DNA of 64,000 nt from the NCBI GenBank assembly GCA_002269645.1, contig NIVC01000581.1:1-64000 (forward strand), written 5' to 3'. Below are positions 4,508 through 51,222 of the stretch, piece by piece. The notes below the pieces were generated by a model, which worked only from the letters and a program-made list of their open reading frames with translations, had not been told where the DNA came from and ran no database searches. The position numbers and the translations under genes were made by a program. Position 1 is the stretch's first letter. Every line of letters starts with the position of its first letter. The DNA comes from Macrostomum lignano. Its lineage: Eukaryota.

Positions 4508-4654
4508 AGTCCCGAAATGACACATCTAAGTCCCAAAATGACACATCTAAGTCCCGAAATGACACATCTAAGTCCCGAAATGACACAATTAAGTACCAAA
4601 ATGACACATCTAAGTCCCAAAATGACACATCTAAGTCCCGAAATGACACATCTA
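4508..4654 (+). repeat. 21-bp tandem repeat x7 (AGTCCCGAAATGACACATCTA) upstream of the ATPase
   Basis: Read directly from the sequence. Confidence 0.95.
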
Positions 4655-4693
4655 AATTATTATTATTTAAATTTTTTTTTCATCATAGAAAAA

Positions 4694-5494
4694 ATGGACT
4701 TTTCAAACGACTTCAATCCTCACTGGACGCGTAATCAGATTAAGTTTTCTCATCACGAGTCAATTCCGAGTCACTTCAGATGCATTGTTGTTGGTTCATC
4801 AGGTTCAGGTAAAACATTCAGAGTCTTTAACATGCTTCTTAGACCTGGCTTTATCGACTATGACACTCTGCACATCTACTCTCCCACACTGTATCAAGAT
4901 GAGTATAAAATGTTGATTTCTGGATTGCAAAACAAACTGCACAAAGAGGACATTATTGCATGTTTTAATAACCAAATGAGCCTTCCCAGTAACCCTGAAA
5001 TTGTAGCTGCTGAATATGCAAAGCACCTCAAAGACAATGAAAAATGGCAGAACATTAAAGTGTTCACCTATGGAGATCCACAGGCTGATCCAAAGACCAA
5101 ACTTCTACCCCAACCAGATGAGCTAGAAAAGGGGAGAAAGCATTTGATCGTCTTTGATGATTGTATGACAGGCCCACAGAAGCAGATAGAAAACTATTTT
5201 ACAAGAGGGCGACATAACAATTGCAATGTAATTTACATTGCACAGAATTGGTTCGAGCTCCCGAACAAAACAATTCGTGGGAACTGCAATCTGATTCTCC
5301 TGTTTCCAACCATTCCACAGGACAGGCTAAAAAGATTTTACAATGAGGTCATTGCGCCTGCCTATTTCATAAATCCAACAAAAAACTCAAGCAGAAAGAT
5401 TTCACAAGAGGAATTCGTTAATCTTTGCTATGACAAGTGGAATCAGCCTTACCAGTTTGTGATTATCAGCAAAGAAAAAAGAACTGTAATTTAA
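4694..5494 (+). CDS. A32/FtsK-like DNA packaging ATPase (intact)
   Basis: Walker A GSSGSGKT, Walker B LIVFDD, and the RGRH...IAQ motif. Likely start is MDFSNDF at 4694. Confidence 0.95.
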   Translation: MDFSNDFNPHWTRNQIKFSHHESIPSHFRCIVVGSSGSGKTFRVFNMLLRPGFIDYDTLHIYSPTLYQDEYKMLISGLQNKLHKEDIIACFNNQMSLPSNPEIVAAEYAKHLKDNEKWQNIKVFTYGDPQADPKTKLLPQPDELEKGRKHLIVFDDCMTGPQKQIENYFTRGRHNNCNVIYIAQNWFELPNKTIRGNCNLILLFPTIPQDRLKRFYNEVIAPAYFINPTKNSSRKISQEEFVNLCYDKWNQPYQFVIISKEKRTVI

Positions 5495-7618: not shown

Positions 7619-10600
7619 CTAATCTCCAGTGCCCGAACGGTAGACTGTTATATTGTCATCAAAAATGAATCTCTTGTTATCTGCACCTGACAGTCCAATC
7701 TTCTTTTGCTGAATTGTGTGAATAATATGGTTTTTAGATTGTAGCTTTGAGAACTCATGTGATGTCTTTTTGTTGCAATTCAAGGCGTCTCTGTATTCAG
7801 CTTCATTAATTTCCTTCCTAACCACACGTTTCGGAATTCCCTTTGATTTTTTATTGGGTCTGACGACTCACATTTTACAAAATAGGACTTTGCTCTCAAC
7901 CCAATGAATTCAGTGATTATGTCACCAGCAATCTCGTCCTTCATTTTCCCAATCACTTTCTTGTTAGTGGCGTCAAACACTTGATCGCCATTCTGTGTCC
8001 TGCAAGATTCATCATACTCAGACAAGTCAAACAAATCTTTTTGCTGCAGCATGTCCTGATAAATGTCTTCTGTTTGAATGTCCATAATAAAACTGTCTGT
8101 GTCAGTGTACAAGAGTTTCATTTTATCCTTGTACTGCTGCTTCATGCCATAGAAGAACTGGTACATCAGACGTTTTGATTCGTCGAGAACAGTGACACCT
8201 GTATAGATCGGCTTGCGCAGCGTCACCTTGGTTTTGTAAAATATGATCACACCTAAGTAGCTATTAAAGATATGGAGTTCTTTGAATGTTGGCTTTGACA
8301 TATTTGCCTGAATAACAGCAGGCTCTGATGAGGTAACAAGTTTCAGGTTTGTTCTTTTCCGCTCATTCTCAAGAGTCTTGCCATAGACAGAGTTGTTGGC
8401 CAACTTAAAGAGGTTCTTGTCAAAGTCGTTGGTTGCTTTGGTCCTAAACTGGGTGTTCTTATCAATGTAGGGTTTCATCCACGCTTCCTCTGTAAATGTA
8501 AGAGCCCGTGAACTTTGGTGACCCTGCAACCAAGTGAGATAAAATACTGAAGCAGTTTGTAATGGATTTTGTAACGTGTCTTGTTGTTTAGATTCTGTGT
8601 TAGTTTCTCTGTATGTTCTTTTTCTGTTCCTGACAGCCAAGTTCCATTATTATCATTGGGAGTTTCGATTATTTTCGGGCACTTGATGTTCTCTGGGAAG
8701 GGTGGAAAGTCAGAGAAATAGTCGTGAAGCTCTGGTGGAATGTAAACATCAACTTCATAAATGGCAGCCAATGAAAAGTCCCGTTTGAATTCTGATGAGG
8801 GTAGCCATCGAAAATCTCTAACTGGAAGATCTTGACTCATCGCCCACCCGTAGAGATTATTAGCGTCCAAGTAAGTAATGTAGTTTGAGGGCTGCTCCTT
8901 ATTGTAAGATTCAATGTAGGGATTGTTTGCTTTTGCATACCTGTTAACGCAAATTGAGATCCCCCTCGCTTTGACGATTCGACAAAATTGTACATGTCAA
9001 TGTCTGTAAGAAGTTCAATGTACCAATCTGGATCTTGATCCCATTTCATTTTAAGCAAAGATTCCCAGCTAGTGGCAGGCAGAGACACATAATGTGCTGG
9101 ATCGAGGCCATATGCTGTGTACCAGGTGTATCTGAAGGTTTCAAACACATCGGCCAGCAGAAACACATCTGTGAAGAGGTAAAGCAGGTGATACTGGAAG
9201 AAGTTTTGACAATTAAAGTAATTATAGACATGCTTCGCGTGCTCATAGTCTTTGTCAGAGATTCCAGAGTCTGTTAGCTTTGAAAAGAACTTCTCCTGTG
9301 GTGGTAAACCTTCTTCAAATACGTGATACCCAGTAATATTTTCATAGGGGTAGAAGCCTTTGGTTCTCAGGAGTTTAAATGATTCATCACTGTTGTAAAT
9401 TTTACTTGCAAACATCTTTGTATATGTACATTGTTCATCTTTTAGATTCTTGCTTAGTTCGTCTAGACTGGCAGCTAGAAATTGATATGAATCCTTCAGT
9501 CTTATTTTACCTGTACCCGAACCTTACCTTACCCGAATTATCCTGTTTAATATCAACACACTTAAACTTCTCCTTGTTCTCTGCGATGCAGTCAAGGTGT
9601 ATGTCTGGAATCATGCCGATTTTTTCAACTATTAAATGCATGTCATAGTTCTTTGCGTTGTGACAAAATATCGTTAGATCATGAATGTTCGATTTTAGCT
9701 GTAGATTACAGGTGTTATGCGCTGCACCTCTAAATTTCCCAGTAAAGTGGCAGTGGTCCCTAACGGTGGGGTTTTTAATATCAGTGCAAGTTAAATGTTT
9801 CCTGCAGATGTGGCAATGAGTTGCTGATAGGAAATTGCTTTCATCCTCCTCAGTCATCATTATTGGAACAGGTTGAAGGGTGCTAATCACTTTTGCAACT
9901 CTAACATTCTGGCAATAAACTGCTCCACACACTGCTCTCCAAAGAAATAATTATACTCAACAAGTCCTTTTGTATTAATAAAGGCATATGCTACTGAATT
10001 GGGGACATGTTTTTGAGTTTGAGTTTGTTTTTGAGTTTCTGGCATGATTGAGCATTCGAAATCAGCATATACAACAAATGGGAGCTTCTCCATCTTGTGA
10101 TAGTTCTTAAACCGGAGATACTTCTCTTCAGCTGAAGGAAGAGAGCAGTTTGTTGGGTGATCCTCGCATGATAATTCATGCTCTGTTAGTTTTTCAAAGC
10201 GTTCAGGTCCACTGTAATGCTTAAGGCACAAGCGGCAGATGGCAACAGCCTCGTGATGATTATTCAACTGCTTGTGAATGAGTCTTGAAAGATCTTTAAT
10301 CCAAACATAGTGAGCCTCCTCTAGTAAATTACCAATCACTAGAAGATCCACTTCAGTCCGCCTTTTCCCCTCAGGATCTAAAACGTCTTTGCTACATCTG
10401 ACCGGTTGAACTTTCTCAGTTTTTTCACTCCATCAAAGACTGTGATTCTAATTTTGTTATTAAACACTTCTTCTAGCTTTGGATCTGAGAGATCGCCAAG
10501 CCTCCTTTGTCAAACCTGATTCCCTTCTTTTCGCATTCGATGAGATAGTAGTTGAAATAATTTTGATAATTTGAGGTTCTTTCGGGGTGGTGAGGTACAC

Positions 10601-12049: not shown

Positions 12050-13045
12050 TTAATTAATTTCTGTGTCAGCCGGTATCACTAGGAGTTCAGCTCTAGTGAA
12101 TGACCGCGTGGGGGATTTAGGGTTAAAGGCCTGAGATAAAAAGTAATAGTCACCAGAGTCGGAGGTAAAATGTCTGTCTATTTTATGTACATCAAGGCTG
12201 AAGTATGGATCTGTAGCTCTTCTTTTAGTGTCTTTCTCTAGCTCTCCAGGTAGATATAAAAAGCGTAGAAACTCAGAGTTTGTCAGTATATATGGTGATT
12301 CAACTCCTGGAAGCTTAGGGTAGTTCGAGGTGTCTGTTCTATGAGATGACTTAAGTTCGACAGTGTCTTGTTTAATTGCATGGGACGGTTTCAATCCAGT
12401 CATACGTGTGACTTCATTGTTCAGTTGCTCTATAACAGTGGGGAGCCGGTCTGTCCACTTGGTATAGTATTGGCCACTTTTTAGTTTCAGCTCTACAGCT
12501 GTCTGCTTAGTGAATAGCCTCTTGGCTAGAGTTAGATTGAATCTCTCAACGTACGCTTGGTCTCTGTGCAAGTTTGTTCTGCCATAGCGAATCTCTGTGT
12601 CATGCTTATGTAGAAGTGATTTCACTGCACCCATGAATTCTTTGCCAGGATCAGTCATAAAGGTTTCAGGGTAGCTAAGGGGTGAGTTTTTATAAATATC
12701 TTGGAGGGCGGCTGCAACTGCTTCTGACTTCTTCGTCTTAAGCGGTCTCGCTTCCTTATATCTGGAGGCAACATCTGTAATTGTGAGAGCATACTTGTAG
12801 CCCGAGTCATTGGGGAGAAACAGAAGATCTGCTTGGTGCGCCTCATTAGGTTTATAAATACTGAAATGGGGCCTTTCAAATTTTACTGGTGGGAAATAGA
12901 CTTGGTAGACTGCTTGCTTAGAGAGCCACTTTTCTACTTTAGCTTTTGGTTCCTTACTTAGTTCTGCGAGTTTGGTGACTGCATTTTTTCCTACAAAGAA
13001 TCCTTTGTCGCTGTAGTAGAGTTTTTTAAGTTTCTGATCTGTCAT
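12050..13045 (-). CDS. Retroviral-type (rve) DDE integrase, intact, no C-terminal chromodomain
   Basis: HQADL (D), TDPGKEF (D), VERFNLTL (E). Confidence 0.95.
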   Translation of the reverse strand: MTDQKLKKLYYSDKGFFVGKNAVTKLAELSKEPKAKVEKWLSKQAVYQVYFPPVKFERPHFSIYKPNEAHQADLLFLPNDSGYKYALTITDVASRYKEARPLKTKKSEAVAAALQDIYKNSPLSYPETFMTDPGKEFMGAVKSLLHKHDTEIRYGRTNLHRDQAYVERFNLTLAKRLFTKQTAVELKLKSGQYYTKWTDRLPTVIEQLNNEVTRMTGLKPSHAIKQDTVELKSSHRTDTSNYPKLPGVESPYILTNSEFLRFLYLPGELEKDTKRRATDPYFSLDVHKIDRHFTSDSGDYYFLSQAFNPKSPTRSFTRAELLVIPADTEIN

Positions 13046-24527: not shown

Positions 24528-26972
24528 TGCTGCAAGCTGGCTTTTGCCCGAGCAGATTTAAGTTTATCTTTAACTGAAGTATGATCATAGACTATTTCAT
24601 TTGCCTGTATTGAGCAAAAGAGCCTAACTAAAGGCAAACCGCTTGGAAATAAGTAAAACAAAAAAAAGTTGAATGTGCCAAGCAGACATCGGCAAAAGAA
24701 GGCCGAAGGTACTACAGCGCATATTCAGGGCTTTGAGCCCAGTGTTTCAGTACAAACTTGTAACAGTGGCGTCGCAAGCACTCCAGATTTAAATGAAGAG
24801 CAACGAGCACCAGCAATCGGCAGCAGCAAAGTCTGTGGGCTCACTGTCCCTCAAGCATGCCAAGGTTGTGACAGAAGCGCCAGCTCATCAACAACAGGCA
24901 AAACTGGCAGCATCACTGTCTCGCCAGCAGGCCAAAGTGGTCTTAGTTAAAGATTTGTGCCAAATCTTTCACACTACCTTGAACCGCTAACTAGATTAAT
25001 GTGCAAAAGAAATGATTTTCAATGGGGATCTGAGCAAGATGAGGCATTCATGCGGATCAAGTCCATGCTGACGGAAAATACAGCTCTGGCAAATTATGAC
25101 CCGAAGAAACCTGTGACGTTGGAGTGTGACGCTTCCCAAAAAGGACTGGGCGGAGTTCTGATTCAAGACAACATGCCCGTTTTGTACATCAGCAAGAGAC
25201 TGTCGAAAGCTGAGAAAAAATATTCTCAGATCAAGAGGGAGGCTCTAGCAATTATCTGATCAACGCAAAGGTGCCAGCGGTTTCTTGCAGGGTGTCACTT
25301 CACTCTAATCACAGATCACAGACCGCTTACGTACATTTTTGGTCCAAACAAAGGCTTGCCTATGCGCCTGTCAGCACGACTGCAGAGGTAGGCGATATTG
25401 TTGATGGCTTTTGACTTTACTATTGAATATCAGAGGTCAAAATTTATGAAATCAGATGCCTTGTCACGATTGTTAAGGGATGATACAGTGCAGACATACA
25501 CCGTTGGGAGTATTGAACTACCTTCAACAATCATATCTGCTGAGGAGGTAAAAAACAATCAATGGATTGCCCAGAAATTTTTCTGCTGAAAGAAGCTATT
25601 CGGTCCAGTAACTTCAACCATCCTAGTATTCGTCTTTTTAAGGCAGTTGCAGATGAACTAACGATTGAGTCAGATATTGTCATCAGGGATACGCGAATCG
25701 TTCTGCCGAAGAGTCTGAGGTTTTCTGCAATTCAGACAGCACACAGCACCCATTTGGGCATAGATCGAACTTTGTCACTTTTGAGATCCCAGTTCTGGTG
25801 GCCTGGTTTAAATAAAGATGTGAAACAGCACATCGGAAGCTGTGTAACCTGTAAGATGGTTAAGCCACGCAATCGAAGCTTCCTGACATCTTGGCCAACA
25901 GCCACGGAGCCATGCAAGCGTGTACATGCTGATTTTGCAGGTCCTATAGATGGCCAGTACTTGCTAATACTTGTGGATGCAATGTCCAACTACCTAGAAG
26001 TGCATTTGACAACCAATATGGAATCGTTGACAGTAATTTCCAGATTTCAAAGGACGTTTTTGCAGTGGGGCGTACCAAAGACTCTTGTGACTGATAAAGG
26101 GTCTAGCTTCATCTCAGCGGAGACAATGCAATGGTTGAAAGCTATTGGTTGCAACCATGTAACAACACCTCCGTACCACCCTCAGAGTAATGGGGTAGCT
26201 GAATGATTTGTCCGTACTATGAAAGAATCCGTGTCAGCATTGGGTTTGAGTCAACAAAACATTGACAGATTCCTGCTGTTTTATCGATCATCAAAAGGAA
26301 ACAATGGCCGTACACCATCGAAGAAGTTTTTAGGTCGAAACATTCAAACTCCTTTGATGTCGGATTTTTCTAGAGATGACGAGGTCGTGTACAAGACAGA
26401 AAGAGCTACGTCGTTGGCTAGAGTCATCTTACCAACTGGTCGAAACACAGCTATTATCAAGCTCGACAACGGTGTGTACAAAAGGGCACACTGGGACCAG
26501 ATGCAAAGTTTCCAGTCTGGTGGCGACAAGGGCACTGACTTGGAACAACTGGTTGCTGACGGTGCTAGTGAGGTGAATCAACCTCTAGATACGTTCCCTT
26601 GAAAACCAGAGCCGGTGCAGGAGCCGGTGCAGGAGCCAGAGCAGCAGCAACCACAACCTCGGAGAAGTGAAAGACTGTTGACTAAGCCAAGAGTGCATTA
26701 CAAAGAATGAACTGTAAACTTTTGAAGTGGGGAGGGGCTGCGGGCTGGCTTTTGCCCAAGCAGATTTAAGTTTATTTTTAACTGAAGTATGATCATAGAC
26801 TATTTCATTTGCCTGTAATGAGCAAAAAAGCCTAACTAAAGGCAAACCGCTTGGAAATAAGTAAAACAAAAAAAGTTAAACATGCCAAGCAGACATTGGC
26901 AAAAGAAGGCCGAAGGTACTACAGCGCATATTCAGGGCTTTGAGCCCAGTGTTTCAGTACAAACTTGTAACA
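24528..26972 (+). mobile_element. Internally deleted Ty3/Gypsy LTR retrotransposon with 5-bp TSD AGATT
   Basis: LTRs at 24528-24765 and ~26736-26972 end in TGTAACA. PBS TGGCG follows the 5' LTR and PPT GAAGTGGGGAGGG precedes the 3' LTR. AGATT occurs at 24523-24527 and 26973-26977. Confidence 0.92.
24957..26602 (+). pseudogene. Gypsy pol remnant: RNase H + zinc-finger/DDE integrase with premature stops; gag, protease and RT absent
   Basis: LECDASQKGLGGVL, TDHRPL, HSTHLG...CVTC, VHADFAGP, TDKG, PPYHPQSNGVAE. Confidence 0.9.
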
Positions 26973-34156: not shown

Positions 34157-37848
<3,692 letters not shown>

Positions 37849-39156: not shown

Positions 39157-39380
39157 AGACATTCGGTGGACTGTATAGAATTTAATTTCTTTTGTCTGTG
39201 TCAAACTGATTGATTGCATGGCGTTAGCAATTTAACGATATTTCATAAATAATTCTGCCTTTTAACAATGCAATGCGCATTTTGGTTTCGGGGTTTGGTA
39301 AACACTACTGTGGGAGAAACAACATTATTAATTTTCCAAGAGTCCTCGATCGCCTGCTTCAGCCTGCAGTCCCCACCACC

Positions 39381-41790
<2,410 letters not shown>

Positions 41791-47918: not shown

Positions 47919-48517
47919 TCCTGCAGATCCTATAGCATTAGAATGCAGGTCCTGTAGCATTAGGATGCAGGTCCTGTAGCATTAGGATGCAGGTCCTGTA
48001 GCATTAGGATGCAGGTCCTGTAGCATTAGGATGCAGGTCCTGTAGCATTAGGATGCAGGTCCTGTAGCATTAGGATGCAGGTCCTGTAGCATTAGGATGC
48101 AGGTCCTGTAGCATTAGGATGCAGGTCCTGTAGCATTAGGATGCAGGTCCTGTAGCATTAGGATGCAGGTCCTGTAGCATTAGGATGCAGGTCCTGTAGC
48201 ATTAGGATGCAGGTCCTGTAGCATTAAGATGCAGGTCCTGTAGCATTAGGATGCAGGTCCTGTAGCATTAGGATAGAGGTCCTGTAGCATTAGGATGCAG
48301 GTCCTGTAGCATTAGGATGCAGGTCCTGTAGCATTAGGATGGAGGTCCTGTAGCATTAGGATGCAGGTCCTGTAGCATTAGGATGCAGGTCCTGTAGCAT
48401 TAGGATGCAGGTCCTGTAGCATTAGGATGCAGGTCCTGTAGCATTAGGATGCAGGTCCTGTAGCATTAGGATGCAGGTCCTGTAGCATTAGGATGCAGGT
48501 CCTGTAGCATTAGGATG
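47919..48517. repeat. 22-bp minisatellite (GCAGGTCCTGTAGCATTAGGAT), ~27 copies
   Basis: Read directly from the sequence. Confidence 0.97.
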
Positions 48518-48564
48518 CCGCATGGTAGCACTTTTCAGTACAGTTTTCCCGCATCACTAATTCG

Positions 48565-49497
48565 ATGCGCTCACTGTTGCAGGCTGGGGCGCGTCAAAAG
48601 AAGAAAAAGCAGCAGAAGCGCCGCCCCGGCCAGCAACTGCGGCATCGCCAGCTGCGGTCCCACAGCGGCCCGTCCGCCGGAGCACCCAGCCGGCCGGCAC
48701 CATGCGGCGACTTTCTCGGCCTGCCGTGGCGCGAGGAGGCGCAGCTGCGCAAGGCGCTCATCCTCAGCCTCCGCGACGGCCGGCCAGTGAGCCGCCGCAC
48801 CGTGGAGCGCTCGATGGCCGCCGACGCCAACGCCACCCCTGCTGCTCCTACACCAGCCGCTTATCCACCAGCCGCCTCCGTGGCGTTGCGGGCCACTTCG
48901 ATTGCTGCGCCAGCGGCGCCAAAATGCGCGACGCGCCAGCACTGCTCGCAGCCGCCACCGCCGGAGCTCCGCTTGGACCCCCACACCGGCCGGCCCGTCT
49001 CCACCGTGGCCTTCCTCGACTTCCTCTGCTGCTATCGGGCCACAGCTGTAGCCGCCTCCGCCGCCGTGCCCGCTCGCCTGCGCTGGCTCGCCTTGCCACC
49101 AAGCCTTCGTAGAATAAAGAAGCGACCGACTCTCCAGCAGCTGTCGGTGCCGCATGCACCAAGGCCGAGCCCCTTGGCCTCTGACCCAGAGACGCCCGGA
49201 CCGCTGCAGCAGTGCCGGTCACTTCCGCAACCGCGCGAGCAGTCCCCGACTGTTAATGGTGCTGCTGACTGCCTTGAATTCGGCAGGCACAGCGACAGCC
49301 AACTGCTGCACCAGCATCAGCAGGTGGCCGCTGCAACCAGAGCCAAACGACGGGCTCTCGCAACGCTGCGAGCGGCGGCCGCCACCGCCACTGCCGCTGT
49401 CAGTCACTCCGACTGCGATGAACGCGAGGAGCCGCAGCGGCCTTCTGAGGCGAGCCTCCAGTCGGAGCCGAGGCGCAGCCGGCGCCTTGCCGTCTGA
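48565..49497 (+). CDS. JARID2: JARID2 N-terminus-like protein (UIM + PRC2-binding motif) lacking ARID/JmjC
   Basis: [20 protein letters not shown] resembles JARID2 [30 protein letters not shown] resembles DFLTFLCLRG. The start may lie in an upstream exon (TTGCAG acceptor at ~48580). Confidence 0.65.
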   Translation: [310 protein letters not shown]

Positions 49498-49503
49498 TCC
49501 CCT

Positions 49504-49688
49504 CTTAGACTGGCTCAGTTATCTTCTTGAGCTCGCATTGAGACAAGCTTAGACTGGCTCAGTTATCTTCTTGAGCTCGCATTGAGACCAGCTTAGACTG
49601 GCTCAGTTATCTTCTTGAGCTCGCATTGAGACCAGCTTAGACTGGCTCAGTTATCTTCTTGAGCTCGCATGGAAACCCGCTTAGACTG
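49504..49688. repeat. 44-bp minisatellite x4 just after the stop codon
   Basis: CTTAGACTGGCTCAGTTATCTTCTTGAGCTCGCATTGAGACCAG. Confidence 0.93.
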
Positions 49689-50387
49689 ATCAGTAGTAAA
49701 TGTTGAGTTTCCTCGCCACACTGTAGCATGATTCCCCCTGCCTGTCTCTCTTAGCCAATCATCTCGCACCGCCGCTGTTGATGAGCCACTTAATCCGAGA
49801 TTATCTCGGCCGGTTCAGGTTTCTCCGATTCGCTCTCTGTCCATTGTTTGTTTCATCTGCTGTTTTTACTGTAGATATTGATTTTTATAGCCGGCTTTTA
49901 CTTAAATGGCATATCGCGCGAACTGCACTGACTGTATGTTTCCACACTGCTAATCCACATTTATTCGCTTTTGTTTCTTTAGTTACGATTTTCTGTGCTT
50001 CAGTTGGCATCTCATCATTTAACTGCTTTTACTGAAATTCTCTTTTTTATTTCAAGCAGCGCTGCTAACTTTTTCTGGCCTGCCGGAATTGCAAGTTTTG
50101 TAAAGACTGTTGCCATGGCGCAGACGCTTGTAAATAGGCCACTTTTTAACTCGTATTCTGGCCAAATACACGCACTTTAAAGCCATTGTCGCTGACTGAC
50201 TTTGCTAGCATTTGCACGGGTGTACTCGTATTATTTTCTTTATATGGCTTGCCAACAGTTTGTTCCTTCCTCACTTTAGCTTCCAATGTGAGCACTACTT
50301 CCATGGCTCAATAATGTTTCAAATTTGGAATTCTTTCCACTTTCTCTCTACCTCCCTTGCAAGCACTCTGGCATCGGGTTACCCGTG

Positions 50388-51222
50388 TCAGCAGTTCCCC
50401 GTGTTATCAGATCCCCGTGTTATCAGTTCCCCGTGTTATCAGTTCCCCGTGTTATCATATCCCCGATATTATCAGTTCCCCGTGTTATCAGTTCCCCGTG
50501 TTATCAGATCCCCGTGTTATCAGATCCCCGTGTTATCAGTTCCCCGTGTTATCATATCCCCGATATTATCAGTTCCCCGTGTTATCAGTTCCCCGTGTTA
50601 TCATATCCCCGATATTATCAGTTCCCCAATGTTATCAATTCCCCGTGTTATCAGTTCCCCGATGTTATCAGTTCCCCGATGTTATCAGTTCCCCGATGTT
50701 ATCAGTTCCCCGTGTTATCAGTTCCCCGATATTATCAGTTCCCGTGTTATCATATCCCCGATATTATCAGTTCCCGTGTTATCAGTTCCCCGTGTTATCA
50801 GTTCCCCGATGTTATCAGTTCCCCGTGTTATCATATCCCCGATATTATCAGTTCCCCAATGTTATCAATTCCCCGTGTTATCAGTTCCCCGATGTTATCA
50901 GTTCCCCGATGTTATCAGTTCCCCGATGTTATCAGTTCCCCGATTTTATCAGTTCCCCGTGTTATCAGTTCCCCGATATTATCAGTTCCCGTGTTATCAT
51001 ATCCCCGATATTATCAGTTCCCGTGTTATCAGTTCCCCGTGTTATCAGTTCCCCGATGTTATCAGTTCCCCGTGTTATCAGTTCCCCGTGTTATCAGTTC
51101 CCGTGTTATCAGTTCCCCGTGTTATCAGTTCCCGTGTTATCAGTTCCCGTGTTATCAGTTCCCCGTGTTATCAGTTCCCGTGTTAACAGTTCCCCGTGTT
51201 ATCAGTTCCCCGTGTTATCAGT
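50388..51222. repeat. 15-16-bp minisatellite (GTTATCAGTTCCCCGT)
   Basis: Read directly from the sequence; it generates the spurious ORFs at 50212-51262. Confidence 0.97.

Follow-up and report, generated by a model that had tools for sequence, protein, structure and literature searches.

The window analysed here, a 64-kb stretch of the Macrostomum lignano genome (GenBank assembly GCA_002269645.1, contig NIVC01000581.1, positions 1 to 64,000), contains at 48565-49497 of its forward strand a single-exon open reading frame (ORF) whose product carries a stretch resembling the ubiquitin-interacting motif (UIM) in the N-terminus of JARID2. The resemblance in sequence is real and, among solved structures, specific to JARID2, and it lies above chance, although moderately so. 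The explanation that I favour, while holding it tentatively, is that the ORF encodes a lineage-restricted, nuclear and disordered protein with a functional UIM; it probably reads ubiquitin, and possibly ubiquitylated chromatin. A preliminary description of this DNA had gone further and proposed a 'mini-JARID2', with a UIM and motifs for binding Polycomb repressive complex 2 (PRC2) but lacking the Jumonji and ARID domains. The ORF and the three motifs on which that proposal was built lie exactly where it had placed them (48718-48780, 48934-48954, and 49012-49032), and the three motifs turned out to be of very different quality. By its defining features the ORF is not a member of the JARID2 family: it is without the Jumonji/ARID body, without the methyl-lysine motif (K-motif) of the JARID2 N-terminus, and without homology at the level of the family.

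Searching protein structures gave the first line of evidence for the UIM. When the 135-aa central region, which was picked as the segment least diverged between the genomic copies of the gene, was compared with all 177,635 PDB sequences, JARID2 was the sole family returned (E 0.041), and HMMER resolved the match into two colinear stretches corresponding to JARID2 residues 16-48 and 120-168. A 42-aa piece had JARID2 as its four best matches (E 0.048), aligned to JARID2 residues 17-45 and hence to the UIM, while the same 42-mer reversed and used as a decoy returned nothing from the PDB. In a tblastn search of the window with human JARID2 (the N-terminus of the query having been checked against database sequences), the first of the three motifs, hereafter block 1, ranked first (E 0.015, 13/30 identical, 43%).

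A search with a hidden Markov model (HMM) of the JARID2 N-terminus, as suggested in the preliminary description, enabled a ranking of everything that the window could encode: using seven vertebrate JARID2 N-termini, the ORF came first among the 746 stop-free segments in all six frames of the window with 14.8 bits (E 0.001), followed by a runner-up at 4.8 bits, and its score was matched by 2 of 200,000 composition-matched shuffles. An HMM of 61 block-1 sequences gave 15.5 bits, a score equalled in only one of 200,000 composition-matched shuffles (p ~5e-6), and hhalign against 20 vertebrate JARID2 N-termini reported a probability of 43% and an E-value of 2.5e-4 over 35 columns only. Taken with the PDB and tblastn matches, these scores uphold the claim of a JARID2-like UIM.

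Within block 1, aa 57-71 match the UIM consensus Ac-Ac-x-x-phi-x-x-Ala-x-x-x-Ser-x-x-Ac, reportedly set out by Hofmann and Falquet in 2001, exactly (E57, E58, L61, A64, S68, and D71). This is the sole match in the ORF, and the pattern was found in 49 of 200,000 shuffles. An AlphaFold2 (AF2) model, computed from the single sequence and of low confidence, placed a helix at aa 55-70 with a predicted local distance difference test score (pLDDT) of 64-74 between flanks scoring below 50, i.e., the isolated helix in a flexible region that is a trait of UIMs. The N-terminal UIM that characterises JARID2 is present in the ORF as a resemblance of sequence. In JARID2, the UIM comprises aa 24-41 and forms a helix touching the Ile44 patch of ubiquitin as well as DNA (PMC5133711; bioRxiv 10.1101/2020.04.20.049213), and the basic residues aa 42-57 sit on the acidic patch of H2A-H2B (bioRxiv 10.1101/2020.04.20.049213). 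Directly after the UIM of the ORF comes an arginine-rich stretch which may, by analogy, be likened to this acidic-patch segment of JARID2.

It is very likely that the ORF codes for a protein and evolves under purifying selection. Its product of 310 aa (33.6 kDa, pI 11.3) is rich in A, R, P, and L, and is 98% identical to the NCBI entry 'hypothetical protein BOX15_Mlig000251g2, partial [Macrostomum lignano]'; the further NCBI counterparts are Mlig023299g1 and a third copy without a name. The assembly holds three homeologous copies, P0183 (identical to the window copy), P0001 (NIVC01004195.1, locus L001), and P0184 (NIVC01001368.1, locus L002), all of which have a common gene order of Peptidase_M24, a CCT chaperonin subunit, MIF, the ORF, a 690-aa leucine-rich repeat (LRR) protein, and Arf. 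Over its 933 bp the ORF shows no indel between homeologs and an identity of 97.8%, whereas in the unique flanks identity is 92.7% and 95.7%, with 7 and 5 gap openings (12 in 1317 bp). The Poisson probability of an indel-free ORF at the flank rate is 2e-4, and the divergence of the ORF is half to one third of that of its flanks. The 20 nucleotide differences between the ORF copies fall mostly on codon position 3 (12, as opposed to 6 on position 1 and 2 on position 2), as do 9 of the 11 single-nucleotide events, and the ratio of non-synonymous to synonymous change (dN/dS) is 0.24 in the frame of the ORF (+1; binomial p 0.0018). The sole other frame with a low ratio is an antisense frame that has its wobble positions in common with the ORF, and this frame is not open.

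Absence of indels, third-position bias, the dN/dS ratio, and low divergence relative to the flanks all contradict the alternative that this is a GC-rich, stop-poor stretch of a non-coding transcript or untranslated region miscalled as a 'hypothetical protein', which I regard as very unlikely. That alternative can draw on the length of the ORF being weak evidence: in dinucleotide-preserving shuffles of the 985-bp, 68% GC stretch between the flanking tandem arrays, the mean longest open run was 207 codons, and 3.8% of shuffles opened at least 310 codons. Long antisense ORFs are present too, neither homologues nor a Pfam domain were found, and all three gene models are labelled 5' partial. All three copies have the ATG, and the NCBI models start at three different first codons; I read these models as transcript-derived, with 5' ends that were broken at the upstream 22-mer array. 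Upstream of the ATG, a ttttcag resembling a splice acceptor ends 28 nt away and an in-frame stop lies at 48526-48528, so that the gene may have an exon further upstream or receive a spliced leader. Codons 41-171, which include both the UIM and the FLDFLC motif described below, are the least diverged segment and carry only 2 of the 20 inter-copy differences (Fisher p 0.0025). Synonymous sites are also quiet in this segment, and gene conversion is therefore an alternative to selection there.

At the sequence level, the ORF is an orphan that has so far been found in Macrostomum only. A phmmer search that was exhaustive over 1.84 billion representative proteins returned only its own cluster, a homologous-protein search with the ORF likewise returned its own cluster only, and the whole ORF had no match in the PDB and no Pfam family at E up to 10. 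Homology to the JARID2 family at database-wide significance was thus not reached among the 1.84 billion representatives. Since no relative turned up there, the gene was judged not to stem from a canonical JARID2 by recent partial duplication, nor to be a recent duplicate of some other Macrostomum protein, and the suggestion of a recent dominant-negative paralog became unlikely for the same reason.

JmjN, ARID, JmjC, and the C5HC2 zinc finger were absent from the 64-kb window in a tblastn search with full-length human JARID2, in which only the N-terminal motifs matched. The ORF terminates at a TGA, and the interval between the stop codon and the next gene downstream consists of two tandem arrays and ~690 bp without long ORFs. 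This neighbour, the 690-aa LRR protein, had been named as RanGAP1 in the preliminary description, and the assignment was borne out (E 2.7e-56 against human RanGAP1 in the PDB search); with its ORF starting at ~51196, there is indeed no room for ARID or JmjC exons in between.

The remaining two motifs were less convincing. The preliminary description had recognised a PRC2-binding segment of the FLxFLC type (block 3), and this is present and in the same order as in JARID2: FLDFLC occupies aa 150-155, or aa 150-156 with the following Cys, and the residues R, T, F, L, F, L, and C of the JARID2 sequence RKPKTEDFLTFLCLRGS have counterparts in the surrounding block. The assignment as PRC2-binding depends on this six-residue core. 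Compared with the JARID2 TR segment PKTEDFLTFLCLRGS, the FL.FLC core and the upstream R and T are kept, while the invariant flanks PKTED and LRGS are lost, and a profile of 19 distinct JARID2 fragments, among them the four divergent ones P0179-P0182, over which PKTEDFLTFLCLRG is nearly invariant with three single conservative substitutions, scored block 3 at -1.9 bits (p ~0.09 from shuffles). The exact pattern FL.FLC arose in 5 of 200,000 shuffles, although it was defined after the match. The FLDFLC piece alone had no match in the PDB; in the AF2 model, FLDFLC falls within a helix at aa 147-166 with a pLDDT of ~60.

RQHCSQP (block 2) had been described as a weak echo of RKFAQSQP and must be dropped, as the K-motif HMM scored the ORF at -3.6 bits (p 0.47). 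At the position of the K-motif the ORF has ATRQHCSQP, with neither the lysine nor the aromatic residue (Q and H stand in for K116 and F117). The AQRKFAQ methyl-lysine motif itself was invariant in 16 of 16 distinct JARID2 fragments, including the divergent fragments P0179-P0182, and is absent from the ORF; its lysine, K116 in human and K46 in Drosophila, is methylated by PRC2 and bound by EED (PMC8864842). Downstream of FLDFLC, a further likeness to JARID2 (KKRPTLQQ / KRPRLQAQ) was discarded, being out of order and negative in score. Of the three motifs, the UIM scored above chance, whereas the FLxFLC segment, when scored by profile, and RQHCSQP were not significant.

How far do these motifs carry the idea of a true 'mini-JARID2', that is, a stand-alone adaptor from PRC1 to PRC2 that is derived from, or mimics, the JARID2 N-terminus? 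Under this idea, the UIM and the arginine-rich stretch would read nucleosomes carrying H2A ubiquitylated at K119 (H2AK119ub), the FLDFLC helix would dock in the ZnB-Zn groove of SUZ12, and, without a K116-type methyl-lysine, the protein would recruit or compete for PRC2 without allosteric activation. Its attraction lies in the two colinear stretches and in JARID2 being the sole family returned from the PDB, in the similar spacing of the motifs (96 aa in the ORF and 135 aa in human JARID2), in both motifs lying inside the segment least diverged between homeologs, and in the predicted helix around FLDFLC. The JARID2 N-terminus by itself restores PRC2 recruitment in embryonic stem cells (PMC5133711). 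There is also a precedent in EPOP, a lineage-restricted and disordered protein, whose short helix (L315, F319, then C321) fills, in a crystal structure, the very ZnB-Zn groove of SUZ12 that is used by the JARID2 TR segment (PMC12901234). As this unrelated hydrophobic-plus-Cys helix occupies the TR site, the SUZ12 groove tolerates dissimilar short motifs of this kind. The precedent keeps the PRC2 idea alive by analogy, yet it is not evidence that the ORF product binds PRC2. Set against all this are the non-significant score of block 3, the loss of PKTED and LRGS, which are invariant in the vertebrate and P0179-P0182 fragments, and the missing AQRKFAQ. Furthermore, combining the two tblastn matches by a hand-computed sum statistic gave no gain over the first match alone, and no joint E-value is claimed. 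I therefore consider a true mini-JARID2 quite unlikely.

A further argument comes from the conservation pattern within JARID2 itself. Only proteins of up to 311 aa were retrieved with a 179-aa query from the human JARID2 N-terminus, and of up to 108 aa with a 62-column motif profile, and most of the named ones were vertebrate JARID2; the candidate step of the search seems to favour proteins of query length, which places full-length, named invertebrate, and Macrostomum JARID2 outside the retrieved set. Fragments P0179-P0182, which are probably of non-vertebrate origin, keep AQRKFAQG and PKTEDFLTFLCLRGS exactly while their intervening sequence is unlike that of vertebrates, and this makes them useful for telling which motifs of the JARID2 N-terminus are most constrained. 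Among the retrieved fragments these are the K-motif and the TR segment. In P0179, the part ahead of the K-motif is a poor fit to the UIM profile of vertebrates, the fragment as a whole scoring -1.8 bits. In a diverged homologue, one would expect the K-motif and the TR segment to persist while the UIM drifts. The ORF shows the opposite, which favours convergence or an independent UIM over straightforward descent from JARID2, although the fast evolution of flatworms could blur an argument from conservation patterns. Of the JARID2 N-terminal motifs, it is also the UIM that might have come about simply as a generic motif for binding ubiquitin. Literature on JARID2 in Macrostomum, Schistosoma, and planarians yielded a single mention, a planarian 'Jarid2' listed in an RNA interference (RNAi) screen, and it is therefore probable that flatworms possess a gene of the Jumonji type. 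The idea of synteny with vertebrate JARID2 was dropped in view of the human locations of the genes concerned, chromosome 22 for MIF and RANGAP1 and 6p for JARID2.

The remaining competitor to a UIM-bearing ubiquitin reader is coincidence: the ORF may encode a fast-evolving, orphan, disordered protein with its function elsewhere, e.g., in the C-terminal helix, and the UIM-like and FLxFLC strings may have come from its A/L/R/S-rich composition. Several observations weigh against the reader. The E-values linking the ORF to JARID2 are only 0.001-0.05, and JARID2 was picked for comparison post hoc, as the hypothesis was formed once the match had been seen. With only its own cluster found in the exhaustive search, there are no orthologues to show conservation of the motif. 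Neither the UIM nor the other motif pieces matched Pfam at E up to 10, which is uninformative because the UIM of human JARID2, run as a control, was equally without a match, and the search consequently has no power for short motifs. The case for transcription comes solely from the three 5'-partial NCBI gene models, and the length of the ORF counts for little, as the shuffles described above indicate. The affinity of UIMs for ubiquitin is typically very low, and one UIM need not define the function of a protein. Coincidence would fit the marginal E-values and the post hoc comparison, the lack of relatives in the exhaustive search, the missing K-motif, the non-significant block-3 score, and the fact that the structural element predicted with the highest confidence, aa 232-279, is without a JARID2 counterpart. 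On the other hand, it would have to account for the rarity of both the block-1 score and the UIM consensus among shuffles, for a gap of 10 bits between the ORF and every other segment of the window, for JARID2 being the only PDB family matched while the reversed decoy matched nothing, and for the motif-bearing segment being the best conserved between copies. On balance, I find coincidence unlikely, though still a contender to be reckoned with.

For the favoured reading of a lineage-restricted protein with a functional UIM, the most likely mode of action is as follows. The UIM helix (aa 57-71), with G-L-P-W before it and the arginine-rich stretch after it, would bind the Ile44 patch of ubiquitin in the manner of other single UIMs, and the basic flanks would keep it attached to DNA or nucleosomes. 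The protein is predicted to be nuclear from its two K/R clusters and its composition, and would serve ubiquitylated substrates in the nucleus, possibly those on chromatin, as a reader or adaptor. The AF2 model is mostly disordered (mean pLDDT 53), with aa 232-279 as its most confident element; this long C-terminal helix and the FLDFLC helix may serve as elements for partner binding or self-association. The likeness of the UIM to that of JARID2 may go back either to a distant shared ancestry or to a convergent origin of one type of motif.

Table 1. Coordinates of the ORF, its motifs, and adjacent sequence features in the window (aa numbering refers to the ORF product).
Feature	Position	Strand	Basis or remark
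22-bp tandem array, 27 copies	47922..48518	.	abuts the 5' side of the gene; also in the L001 copy
ttttcag, possible 3' splice or trans-splice acceptor	48531..48537	+	read from the sequence; putative function
Single-exon ORF	48565..49497	+	no indels between homeologs, dN/dS 0.24, 98% match to NCBI protein
N-terminal basic cluster, aa 10-31, resembling a nuclear localisation signal	48592..48657	+	composition
JARID2-like block 1, aa 52-72	48718..48780	+	PDB, tblastn, and HMM matches; UIM core aa 57-71
Arginine-rich stretch directly after the UIM	48778..48810	+	placed like the JARID2 aa 42-57 acidic-patch segment
RQHCSQP, aa 124-130	48934..48954	+	K-motif HMM -3.6 bits; without lysine
FLxFLC-bearing segment, aa 143-159	48991..49041	+	colinear with JARID2 TR segment RKPKTEDFLTFLCLRGS; weak profile score
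Second basic cluster RRIKKRP, aa 182-188	49108..49128	+	sequence
Long C-terminal helix, aa 232-279	49258..49401	+	AF2 pLDDT 81-88; without JARID2 counterpart
44-bp tandem array, 4 copies	49504..49688	.	begins 7 nt past the stop codon; also in the L001 copy
16/33-mer tandem array, ~52 copies	50378..51222	.	extends to the RanGAP1 start

The gene is bracketed by the three tandem arrays listed in Table 1 and lies in the gene-dense part of the window. GC content jumps from ~29-41% (positions 1-33000, which bear the transposons) to ~47-62% in that part (34000-64000). About 11 kb upstream of the ORF, consecutive ORFs at 34157-37848 (+) with PHD, PHD, and zf-MYST matches indicate a gene for a MYST-family histone acetyltransferase, and an ORF at 39273-40217 has a weak ADD_DNMT3-like zinc-finger match below the cutoff. 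ORFs in the AT-rich half include one at 4517-5491 (+) with a match to a Pox_A32-like packaging ATPase, one at 8837-9412 (-) whose match to a protein-primed type-B DNA polymerase stays below the Pfam cutoff, and one at 12050-13042 (-) matching an rve integrase; such a set is typical of a Maverick/Polinton-type element. An ORF with Integrase_H2C2 and rve at 25562-26203 (+), also in that half, is a fragment of a Ty3/gypsy-type long terminal repeat retroelement.

If the UIM works, the ORF would give a flatworm that serves as a regeneration model a ubiquitin reader which is lineage-specific and unannotated, and would be a further case of young disordered proteins acquiring short functional motifs. 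A free-standing Polycomb cofactor consisting only of a JARID2-like N-terminus, whether by remote divergence or by motif mimicry, is a distinctly doubtful prospect for Macrostomum. Should it exist, the N-terminal module of JARID2 would for the first time be known in a natural, stand-alone form, as a natural separation-of-function JARID2 in which PRC2 recruitment or competition is uncoupled from allosteric stimulation. Through RNAi in Macrostomum, it would then offer a handle on how much of the PRC1-to-PRC2 crosstalk can run on a UIM and a SUZ12-binding helix alone, with neither K116-type activation nor a Jumonji/ARID body. For the present, the value of the finding is that of a cheap, well-defined, and testable hypothesis rather than of a discovery or an established new Polycomb factor.

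Several known systems invite comparison. EPOP, PALI1/2, and EZHIP are likewise small or disordered and taxonomically young, and contact SUZ12, EED, or EZH2 through few residues (PMC12901234; PMC8864842); the ORF differs from them in showing no sequence similarity, in having a PRC2 interaction that is hypothetical, and in being without a K27M-like or K116-like lysine motif. The DNMT3A1 UDR and the AEBP2 zinc fingers are readers of H2AK119ub that pair a ubiquitin contact with an acidic-patch contact (PMC11266573; bioRxiv 10.1101/2020.04.20.049213), and the ORF may be likened to them by analogy only, through a short putative ubiquitin-binding element beside basic residues. With the canonical single-UIM proteins, i.e., S5a/Rpn10, Hrs/Vps27, epsins, ataxin-3, RAP80, and the DNMT1 UIM, the ORF has in common the exact consensus and a predicted isolated helix in a disordered chain. 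Outside the motif there is no sequence relation to these proteins, none of which scores like JARID2 in the PDB, and the UIM of the ORF occurs once rather than in tandem.

JARID2 remains the closest comparison. Its N-terminus comprises the UIM (24-41), the acidic-patch segment (42-57), the K116 motif, and the TR/SUZ12-binding segment (~147-165), within a protein of ~1250 aa in human (chains of 1246 and 1238 aa) as opposed to the 310 aa of the ORF. The ORF is unlike JARID2 in that JmjN, ARID, JmjC, C5HC2, AQRKFAQ, and the PKTED and LRGS flanks are missing, in having the canonical Ala of the UIM where JARID2 has Val32, and in its extra long C-terminal helix. What the two have in common is a basic N-terminus followed by G-phi-P-W-x-E-E-x-x-phi-R-K-x-L-x-L-S-L-[KR]-[ED], basic residues after this helix, a disordered character of both regions, and, further downstream, PPP...R...T..FL.FLC in the same order and at comparable spacing.

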